Assembly (NCBI RefSeq): GCF_963921235.1
Contig: NC_086108.1
Span: 70,494,001-70,558,000 of the forward strand
Origin: Mobula hypostoma
Lineage: Eukaryota
DNA length: 64,000 bases
Reading direction: 5' to 3'
Both the position numbers and the translations under genes were made by a program. Of this stretch, positions 10,691-13,600 are shown piece after piece; within the stretch, counting starts at the first letter, position 1; every line of letters begins with the position of its first letter. The notes beneath the pieces are model-generated. The model saw nothing but the letters and a program-made list of their open reading frames with translations. It was not told where the DNA came from and searched no databases.

Positions 10691-13600
10691 CTGCAAAAAA
10701 AGTGGTAAAGGGAACAATTTATAAAATGTTTTGCATGTTCACTGTTGGCAATTTGTACAAGCAGGATGTTTTATTGGGAGATGTTAGAAGGACGAAACAG
10801 TCAAATGAGGAATTAATTAGTTCTAACCTGAGACCACCAAAATTCTTGATATGATTTCTACACAAAATACGAAAAGCAGTTTGTAATTTCTGATAATTAT
10901 AATAGAACTTCGAGTTCCTATCGCCGTTGCAATTGTTATTAGCTTGGTTATACTTTCCCTCGCCACCAATTCCTCCTTTTGTCAGACGGGCCAGCAACCT
11001 CTCCAAGCATTAATTTAGAAACTTGAAGTCAATGGGTTTTTTTAATTCACACAACCTCTAAGGAAGCCTTCGACAAAAGCAAAGTTCCATCTCAAGCTTG
11101 AAATATTAAAACAGAAACATTAAAAAAAAACTCCAATTAACCTCCTCCCCCTTTTAGCCTATGGTACGACAATCTCCATTTAAATGAATAGCCTGAGAAT
11201 CCATTGCCAGGTTTAACTTGGCATAGCATCAGAGTACAGATGCTTTTGTACAAATTCTGGGAAATCTTAGGAAGCTCTCTCTGCCATTGAACCATTTGGA
11301 AGCAGAGTGGGGAAATTGCTGCCAAGGCTCGCAGGCAAAAACAGGGCATCTTTGTTCACAAAGGAATCTCAAAGCCTAATGGCACATTTTTTTGAGACTG
11401 CCAACAGATAGTGGGGAATTCCTGAGATTTACTATCAAATCCAATTAATTACCAATTTTGCTCAAGATTTGATAACTAGTTTCTTACATGTAATAGTATA
11501 CAGATTGCCAAGTGTTGCTGGGTTCACTCCCTCACATCAAAATGTAAATGAGTTTCCAAAAATTTCCAAGGAATTCTATAGAATTGCCAAGAATGAAGGT
11601 GGTCTACACAATGTTTAAAAGATTGTGATATCTTTGCGCATGTGCTCAGTTACTTTTGCTCCTTTCTGTTCATGCATTTTTAAATTAAACTTAAATATTT
11701 CTCAGCTATTATTGTGTGAGAATTTTAAGCAAAGTGTTGTATACAACCTGCTGAAATGTTGCTTCTTCCAGACCGAGCCTTTGGAATTCAGCAAGCACTG
11801 CCTTCATAAAAATTTGTTCCTGAACAGATGCATTCCTGCGATGTAGACACAGCATATTAAATAAAAGAAAATGTTTTTCTTTGAATTTAAACCTCAAATT
11901 AATATCTAATCCCTCAACTAAATAAGGTTAGAAAATAAATCACTATTTGTCTTCTAACTTAAAGCAGATTTGTAAATAATTATCTTGATCGCTTAACTAC
12001 AATAACAATCGCTTAATAACAATCCGCTGTGTTCATATTTTTGAATGAAGTTATGTTTGAAATATCAATATTTTTTCATATGGGGTTGAAAGGTTATTGA
12101 ATACTAGTTATTTATTATTCCTTTATATTTTCAGGCTGAACTGCAATAAGAACTTGCATCTATATTGTCCCTTTATCATCTAAAAATGCTTCACAAGTGC
12201 CATTAGAAAAACTCTGGTACAACTCAGATATAGAAATATTTGATTAAGTGACCAAAGGTTTGTTAAATATTGGAGACAGAGTGAGAAAAAAAAAAGTTTT
12301 ATTAATATAGCTCCTTTTGCATCCAGGTCAGAAGCTGCAAGAATAGTGAATATTTTTGAAATGTAATCAATTTCATATTGTAGAGATAGAAAGAAGGGGT
12401 GAGGTTCTCCCCACAGCCCTTTCCTAAACAATCTGATAGCTGAAATGGACTTAAAGCATTAGGATACGGGCCACCTTATAACGTCACTATTTAAAAAAAC
12501 ACAAGATTTTGTCTCGCTTACAGTAAACAAAGATAGAGACAAGGAACATACATCAAAGTTGCTGGGGAACGCAGCAGGCCAAGCAGCATCTGTAGGAAGA
12601 GCTGCAGTCGACGTTTCAGGCCGAGACCCTTCGTCAGGACTAACTGAAGGAAGAGACAAGGAATTTAGTTTCTTACCTTATAGCAGTTATATATGGAGAG
12701 GAAAACATTTCATCAAGGGCTTGTAATACATGAGGCATTCCTACAAGGCTGGATGCAGCTTTCTGACTCAGTGAGTATTCACATATCTCAGCAGCTCTTC
12801 TGCAAATGTCCAGAGCACGCCTTGCATCACCAGAGAGAGCCGCTACCTGTAAGACCAAAAAAAAACTTTACCAGTGAAATGCTGAAAAATAAACCATCAA
12901 CTCCTCTCATTACCGGTCACTCTTACTGTTTCACCATCATCTCCAGCAACTACTTTGCATTTGCTTTCTTCCATAATTTCCAGTTTTATTTAACCAGATG
13001 CTACTCACCTTTCTGGCTACCAGCTGAATTGCATCGTTCTCAAAAGCCTTTAATCGGTTGAGTCTGGAAGAAATGATTTGCTGCAACTGTTTGTAGGTGT
13101 ATGGTTGGAAGGACATTCTGGTCAGTCCCTACATCAAAAAAAACGTCATTATCTCACTAAATCCACATATATTATGCAGTGCAGCAGTTAATTAAGTTTC
13201 ATCTGTCACTGAAAAGAATGCAAACCTTGGAAGAGGCTATTTTTGTTTGTTGATGAAGACTGAATTCAGAATGGCTTATAACATTACACTGAATACCAAG
13301 AAAACCTTTAATAGTTTGTTGTAAATAATGCTAATGTACTCACCAGCCTGCTTGCCACCCGGTTCATCATGATCCTCTCTGGAAGATCCATCGTATTAGC
13401 TATTGCCAAAACAACTAATTTTGCCTGTTTTCGTGTGGGCCAGTCAAACAGATTGTACATAACATTTTGCTTCCGGGTCCATAAAAGATCAAGCTAAAAG
13501 AAACACAAAGCTTGGGTATTGGTTACAGAGTGAGGTCAAAAAGTAAGCGGGCTATCTTTGATTTTCTTGCTAGATATTTATCAGCAACATTGTTATTGAA

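Follow-up and report, generated by a model that had tools for sequence, protein, structure and literature searches.

A minimal type-I hammerhead motif in an ORC1 intron of the ray Mobula hypostoma, probably the passenger of a Penelope-like retroelement copy

Introduction

The window analyzed here is a 64,000-nucleotide stretch of the Mobula hypostoma genome (assembly GCF_963921235.1, contig NC_086108.1, positions 70,494,001 to 70,558,000 of the forward strand), which includes part of the ORC1 gene on its minus strand. One ORC1 intron harbors a 105-bp insert with a minimal type-I hammerhead motif in sense orientation. The insert is a new copy of an already known hammerhead type, that of the Penelope-like elements (PLEs), and as such routine transposon debris in an intron. 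In the reading that we favor, with a probability of roughly 85%, it is a young, 5'-truncated and tail-less copy of the terminal region of a PLE, or of a short derivative moved by a PLE, which resides in the ORC1 intron as a passenger and is inactive as a monomer. The original prediction, made from the sequence alone, had proposed an influence of the insert on ORC1; this proposal is unsupported and improbable in view of the normal splicing of ORC1, the huge size of the repeat family, the weak cleavage published for minimal hammerhead ribozymes (min-HHRs) and the inactive predicted fold.

The insert could have come to its present position in the following manner: Its source would be the terminal (pseudo-long terminal repeat, pLTR) region of a PLE, or a short non-autonomous derivative mobilized by one. 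Target-primed reverse transcription would have placed it 25 nt downstream of the ORC1 5' splice site, duplicating 12 bp of the target, and the minimal type-I hammerhead would have been carried along. Within its parent element, this motif presumably serves the RNA biology of the element itself; helices I and III would form only with a second copy, in a domain-swapped dimer, and a protein of the element is probably needed as well. In the ORC1 pre-mRNA, the motif would be a mere passenger: as a monomer it is predicted to form no three-way junction and to adopt an inactive rod, with the core GACG base-paired to CGUC of the cleavage site, and the intron would be removed normally.

The insert and its target site

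The exon preceding the insert-bearing intron (12677-12846, minus strand) encodes the Cdc6/ORC AAA-lid. Its translation matches the Pfam domains AAA_lid_10 (E=4.3e-7) and Cdc6_lid (E=1e-5), pieces of mRNA contigs cover 12676-12844, and in the assembled ORC1 mRNA contigs it is the third-from-last coding exon. On the minus strand, the exon ends with CTATAAG at 12677 and is followed by GTAAGA, so that the GT donor lies at 12676-12675; the intron of 841 nt (11836-12676) closes with an AG at its 3' end. The next exon was located at 11748-11835 (minus strand) by translation and mRNA contigs, and the translations of the two exons downstream of 12677-12846 resemble the ORC1 C-terminus.

The boundaries of the insert (12547-12651, minus strand) were obtained from sequence reading, BLAST and family alignment. 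Its first base, 12651, is intron position +26, and it is framed by a perfect 12-bp target site duplication (TSD), TTCCTTGTCTCT, with the upstream copy at 12652-12663 and the downstream copy at 12535-12546 (both minus strand). A 105-bp insertion with a perfect 12-bp TSD past the ORC1 donor, in sense orientation to the gene, is what had originally been described, and both repeats are indeed perfect and all elements read on the minus strand. Because contigs from other family copies align on to 12655, reaching into the upstream TSD copy, and because TTCCTT at the 3' junction aligns with TTGCTT of the element, an internal 3' end common to other tail-less copies, a few of the TSD bases may represent microhomology between target and element, namely CTCT (the last 4 nt of the upstream copy) at the 5' side and TTCCTT/TTGCTT at the 3' side. 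For the initial 10 nt of the ORC1 copy, a short snap-back arm was also considered; this assignment was rejected, as other family contigs share TCCTTCAGTTAG and extend upstream.

The ORC1 copy has the simplest form, with neither fold-back nor tail, and its clean, well-defined boundaries make it a useful example of a tail-less PLE insertion. Over 95 bp it is 94.7% identical to a copy at 62814-62720, and all five CpGs are kept in both; by these marks, both copies are young.

The hammerhead motif

The motif comprises 36 nt (12606-12641, minus strand), as established by sequence reading, folding and a descriptor scan, and on the ORC1-sense strand its layout is AGUC-CUGACGA-AGGGUCUCGGCCU-GAAAC-GUC^GACU. 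The strands of helix I are AGUC (12641-12638) at the 5' side and GACU (12609-12606) at the 3' side. Between them follow the core CUGACGA (12637-12631), the helix II region AGGGUCUCGGCCU (12630-12618), GAAA (12617-12614) and CGUC (12613-12610), which provides C15.2, G16.2, U16.1 and C17; the palindromic ACGU is at 12614-12611. The predicted scissile bond lies between C17 at 12610 and 12609, the positions also named originally, and corresponds to intron positions +67/+68.

The earlier description of the hammerhead as intact holds for one part of the motif and fails for another. Every conserved nucleotide of the catalytic core (C3 U4 G5 A6 N7 G8 A9, G12 A13 A14, A15.1-U16.1 and a position 17 other than G) is present, as had been claimed, with CUGACGA, GAAA, U16.1 and C17 all located. 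The architecture around the core is incomplete: A junction of three helices within one molecule is impossible, since helix III would consist of an A-U and a C-G pair with zero loop nucleotides. The closing pair of helix II, G10.1-C11.1, is absent; position 11.1 is a U (12618), giving either a G.U pair with a bulged A or an A-U pair. Helix I is limited to the 4 bp of AGUC/GACU and one U.G, one base pair less than the sister copy described below possesses, and the competent fold is predicted to make up only ~5e-4 of the ensemble.

In metazoan PLE min-HHRs, helix I is short (4-5 bp) and loop 1 is not clearly formed, one nucleotide stays unpaired after A9 and before 10.1, G10.1-C11.1 is conserved as a pair, and the palindromic positions 15.2/16.2 pair without a loop 3, which implies a dimeric active form (Cervera & de la Pena 2014, PMC4209133). 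The ORC1 motif shares with them the type-I layout, the short helix I without a defined loop 1, the extra nucleotide after A9 (A at 12630, between 9 and 10.1), and GAAA followed by palindromic 15.2/16.2 and no loop 3. Also alike are the position near the 3' end of the element and the predominance of single, truncated, dispersed copies, sometimes arranged as pairs on opposite strands. The proposed connection to PLEs, including the loopless palindromic helix III and the dependence on a dimer, thus agrees with PMC4209133 and with the anatomy of the family in the window. In contrast to the conserved G10.1-C11.1 of the published motifs, the ORC1 copy and most close family contigs have a U at 11.1, and helix II comprises 3-4 bp here and 6-8 bp in the Schistosoma min-HHR families. 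For coelacanth and Xenopus, 4,000-9,000 min-HHRs have been counted; the ray family looks far larger, by rough extrapolation from ~9 copies in 64 kb.

The specificity of the motif was assessed by a min-HHR descriptor (helix I of 4 bp; CUGANGA; no fewer than three pairs closing helix II, one additional 5' nucleotide being allowed; GAAA; paired 15.2/16.2; U16.1; non-G at 17), which was applied to both strands of the window and of 300 first-order Markov simulations of it. Two matches were found in the real window (12637 and 62810) and none in the 300 simulated ones. In close family contigs, position 11.1 (12618) is a U in ~75% and a C in ~25%, a distribution that would be consistent with either CpG decay or a U-bearing master copy. 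The young subfamily may descend from a master in which the canonical G10.1-C11.1 pair had already been lost, and such a master would suggest that efficient self-cleavage is not needed for the mobility of the family.

A probable Penelope-like repeat family

BLAST searches of the window, with the insert and with a longer copy as queries, revealed at least nine family copies in 64 kb. The sister copy at 62690-62838 (minus strand; BLAST and pairwise comparison) carries the identical 36-nt hammerhead at 62814-62779, together with a 3' tail of 30 bp (62719-62690) and a perfect inverted 5' arm of 26 nt at 62838-62813, which pairs with 62792-62767. Its TSD of 20/21 bp (62858-62839 and 62689-62669) is unusually long, and its host is a Tc1/mariner-like transposon at ~61973-63200 (HTH_Tnp_Tc3_2, E=2e-18). 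The hairpin predicted for this copy has a minimum free energy (MFE) of -83 kcal/mol, and the snap-back arm buries the cleavage site GAAACGUC^GACU.

The other copies are older or less complete. At 51526-51735, a fold-back (inverted dimer) copy has arms of 68 nt that are 93% complementary, a tail on one arm only and decayed hammerhead cores; a second older fold-back, at 28140-28286 within an ORC1 intron, is devoid of the CUGANGA box. An older copy with tail at 38067-38212 (plus strand) has a mutated core (CUGCCGA; ACAU), and one at 29153-29317 (minus strand, sense to ORC1) retains CUGAUGA with GAAA changed to GAAG. The short copy at 16415-16496 (minus strand) consists of the 3' end and tail without the hammerhead part, and a further match is at 59561-59609. 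Among the other sense copies in the visible part of ORC1, descriptor scan and alignment found no cis partner with an intact core.

In the family alignment, the consensus ...TTCAGTCCTGnnGAAGGnTCTCGGCCTGAAACGTCGACTG... is followed by ~60 nt and then by either of two 3' ends: the ORC1 copy and two others end with ...GTGTGTTGC(TT), and five run 30-40 nt further (GGATTTCCAGCATCTGCAGA...). Tail-less ends are at 12547, 28140 and 51735, tailed ends at 62690, 38212, 16415 and 51526, and the two classes are ~30 nt apart. In the three fold-back insertions (62838-62813/62792-62767, 51564-51631/51669-51736 and 28137-28247), the extension is present on a single arm. Head-to-tail tandem units of the family were not found in the window by BLAST.

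Strong 5' truncation, inverted 5' arms, two classes of 3' ends and TSDs of variable length (12 bp; 20/21 bp) are hallmarks of PLEs. Insertions of these elements show 5' truncation, an adjacent inverted 5'-truncated copy and a ‘tail’ of 30-40 bp at one end (Craig et al. 2021, PMC8557442), the latter having been traced to two start sites of reverse transcription (Frangieh et al. 2024, PMC11167929). The 3'-end classes 30 nt apart, the fold-backs tailed on one arm and the variable TSDs of the ray family follow this signature, of which the ORC1 copy displays the tail-less, non-fold-back kind; its junction microhomology is suggestive only. From these hallmarks we infer that a PLE supplied the mobilizing enzyme. 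An origin of the family as the 3' tail of a long interspersed nuclear element (LINE) had been considered, as a LINE reverse transcriptase is encoded ~1 kb upstream of the copy at 38067-38212; it was rejected because no other copy shares the upstream sequence and because the signature of tail and fold-back is PLE-specific.

Related type-I hammerheads occur in non-LTR retrozymes, newt satellite 2 and Schistosoma Sm-alpha (PMC7229834; bioRxiv 10.64898/2026.07.22.740005), which are similar in their weak helix III, their action as dimers and their PLE-related origin. They differ in being organized as tandem arrays that give rise to circular RNAs, and in having tertiary contacts between loops, whereas the insert in the ray is a single unit without a tandem partner.

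The abundance of the family is also apparent from sequencing runs of two species. On the stretch, 21,815 DNA contigs and 2,400-3,300 RNA-run contigs were placed, with almost all of the depth over the insert; at 12538-12704, summed contig depth exceeds that of the flanking sequence by a factor of 1e5-1e6, in DNA as well as in RNA runs and in both species. In combination with the ~9 copies counted in 64 kb, such depth hints at 1e5-1e6 family members, a rough figure given that depth is not a copy number. The ray lineage carries, by these indications, a very large and recently active PLE-tail family with intact hammerhead cores in its young copies.

Joints that switch strand at 12598-12600/12633-12640, which are typical of fold-backs, are present in DNA and RNA contigs alike. 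Loose contig ends at 12605/12606 and 12641 were examined as candidate cleavage products and rejected because they occur equally in the DNA run; they mark the points where other family copies diverge. The DNA contigs available for the related species have too little depth in the flanks to span the insert site, and neither of two sampled junction words was present in its runs, which is weak evidence of absence given that ~43% of words are retained between the species.

Predicted folding and cleavage capacity

Folding with ViennaRNA favors inactive structures. For the 47-nt core region, the MFE is -12.1 kcal/mol, with GACG of the core paired to CGUC of the cleavage site, versus -7.7 kcal/mol for a hammerhead-compatible pairing. 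Forcing helices I and II with a free core costs 4.2-7.5 kcal/mol in a pre-mRNA context of 201-401 nt, in which the small competent fraction given above was computed. A domain-swapped active dimer would be held by 12 intermolecular pairs (4+4+4) and lies 15 kcal/mol above two folded monomers, and the MFE structure of the dimer is an inactive extended duplex.

These energies, which are indicative, match the weak cleavage that has been published for this type of ribozyme. For a Schistosoma min-HHR in vitro, cleavage of the monomer was undetectable and cleavage of the dimer low (PMC4209133). A hammerhead of the Anolis Poseidon PLE was cleaved only when the protein encoded by the element was present, and RNA-seq showed no read ends at the site (PMC11167929). 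For the ORC1 copy, we infer that cleavage does not take place.

Consequences for ORC1

ORC1 mRNA is normally spliced across the 841-nt insert-bearing intron. Contigs of 2.85-2.9 kb were recovered from three samples, two of them taken from the source species and the third from a relative, and their joints (10690/11748, 11834/12676, 12844/13007 and 13127/13343) are all GT..AG on the minus strand. The joint 11834->12676, which skips 841 nt and reads CT..AC on the plus strand, is present in all three samples; no alternative joint involving this intron is listed in their RNA contigs, which drop rare isoforms.

An effect of the insert on ORC1 is unlikely. The copy is one of at least nine in 64 kb and of an enormous family, and its position in ORC1 is therefore what random insertion gives. 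According to the summaries in PMC10919898 and PMC2995048, slow intronic ribozymes leave splicing undisturbed (Fong et al. 2009), and introns cut by a hammerhead are still spliced (Dye et al. 2006). Only ~775 nt separate the predicted cut site from the acceptor. At typical rates of RNA polymerase II, this distance corresponds to seconds of transcription by our estimate. Because of this proximity and of the published tests of intronic ribozymes, it is very unlikely, by analogy, that a weak and partner-dependent ribozyme would matter for ORC1.

Two known functional examples of self-cleaving intronic ribozymes, the mammalian hepatitis delta virus-like ribozyme of CPEB3 (PMC10919898) and the ultraconserved hammerheads HH9 and HH10 (de la Pena & Garcia-Robles 2010, cited there), resemble the ORC1 motif in being located on the sense strand within an intron of a protein-coding gene. 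They are single-copy, and their conservation extends across orders; as monomers they fold and cleave within minutes, and the next exon is many kb away. The ORC1 motif, in contrast, belongs to a recent repeat copy, cannot fold alone and is ~775 nt from its acceptor.

Alternative explanations

Several observations weigh against the interpretation as an inactive PLE passenger. The assignment to PLEs rests on insertion hallmarks rather than on a joined full-length element. No open reading frame (ORF) with a PLE reverse transcriptase or GIY-YIG domain was detected among ten large ORFs scanned with Pfam (from the ORFs of at least 110 aa, stop to stop, in the window); these gave L1-type ORF1, APE and reverse transcriptase domains, fragments matching RVT_1 alone, the type of which the match does not resolve, and helix-turn-helix domains of Tc1. 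A search with the Rfam models, named originally as a check of the motif, returned no hammerhead, either in the whole window at the gathering score or in 12450-12750 at E<=10; this outcome is to be expected because the models need a helix III hairpin, which the monomer cannot form with 2 bp and no loop. Nearest-neighbor energies ignore the tertiary contacts of hammerheads as well as proteins, and are for this reason no more than indicative. All DNA and RNA runs were available as Logan contigs, from which RNA ends cannot be read, and the RNA runs contain family RNA in great abundance, so that partners in trans are not scarce. That the motif would be a chance match is, despite the missing Rfam hit, practically negligible: The simulated windows yielded none where the real one holds two identical 36-mers, and the motif is common to a repeat family. 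Another possibility is that the insert is not a truncated autonomous PLE but part of a short retrozyme-like or SINE-like (short interspersed nuclear element) unit, itself non-autonomous, that shares only its 3' end with a PLE. All ~9 copies in the window are at most 200 bp long and none is joined to a PLE ORF, the core CUGACGA lacks the AUG that starts an ORF inside the Anolis Poseidon hammerhead (PMC11167929), and vertebrate non-LTR retrozymes have been reported to derive from PLE pLTRs (bioRxiv 10.64898/2026.07.22.740005). Nevertheless, we regard this origin as unlikely, given that the tandem head-to-tail units that define retrozymes are absent from the window and that extreme 5' truncation by itself accounts for short copies (PMC8557442); the mobilizing machinery and the hammerhead type would be the same either way, and the interpretation of the locus would not change.

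The remaining alternatives assign the insert a function in ORC1. Cleavage in vivo as a trans-dimer with other family transcripts might cut the ORC1 pre-mRNA 67 nt past the donor and tune its output by the level of transposon RNA. The complete core nucleotides and the sense orientation are in line with this proposal, as are the family sequences that exceed ORC1 mRNA by orders of magnitude in summed contig depth of the RNA runs (a poor measure), the weak dimer cleavage documented for this type of ribozyme (PMC4209133) and the precedent of an intronic ribozyme that can modulate its host gene, e.g. Cpeb3 (PMC10919898). The proposal is nonetheless very improbable: ORC1 mRNA is normally spliced in three samples, the few pairs of the active dimer would have to outweigh two folded monomers, G10.1-C11.1 is replaced and contacts between loops are impossible. 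A slow ribozyme would also lose the race over ~775 nt (Fong 2009, as summarized in PMC10919898), introns cleaved by a hammerhead would still be spliced (Dye 2006, as summarized in PMC2995048), and the site of the Anolis PLE hammerhead showed no RNA-seq ends (PMC11167929). Similarly improbable is an extended version, in which abundant nuclear family RNA acts as the partner in trans, a fraction of the nascent transcripts of ORC1 and of the many other genes with sense intronic copies is cut before commitment to the spliceosome, and host expression, that of a replication-licensing gene included, becomes coupled to the load of transposon RNA. The insert might also act on ORC1 without any ribozyme, by means of the acceptor-like CUCUUCCUACAG (12601-12590) or of a stable structure close to the 5' splice site. 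A pyrimidine tract followed by CAG is indeed present 87 nt past the donor (12590-12601, minus strand), and predicted local hairpins include the donor-proximal region; since the canonical 841-nt joint alone is listed in the RNA contigs of three samples (in which rare isoforms are dropped) and no use of CUCUUCCUACAG was seen, we consider such an action highly improbable as well.

If copies of this kind did cleave host pre-mRNAs, the effect would extend beyond ORC1 to thousands of genes, and the informative test is therefore genome-wide rather than at the ORC1 locus.

Other retroelements in the window

Retroelements are densely packed in the window, both around ORC1 and within the gene. At 20943-26353 (plus strand), an L1-type LINE that appears near-intact lies antisense within the ORC1 gene region; its ORFs encode an ORF1 with an L1 RBD-like domain (254 aa), an APE endonuclease (353 aa) and a protein of 989 aa with RVT_1 (E=4e-39) and zf-RVT, and these long open frames suggest recent activity. 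Further reverse transcriptase fragments or ORFs are located at 3009-3476, 8187-8870, 35740-37013 and 56904-58586. Three of them match RVT_1, a match that leaves their type unresolved, and the one at 35740-37013 was called from its translation only.

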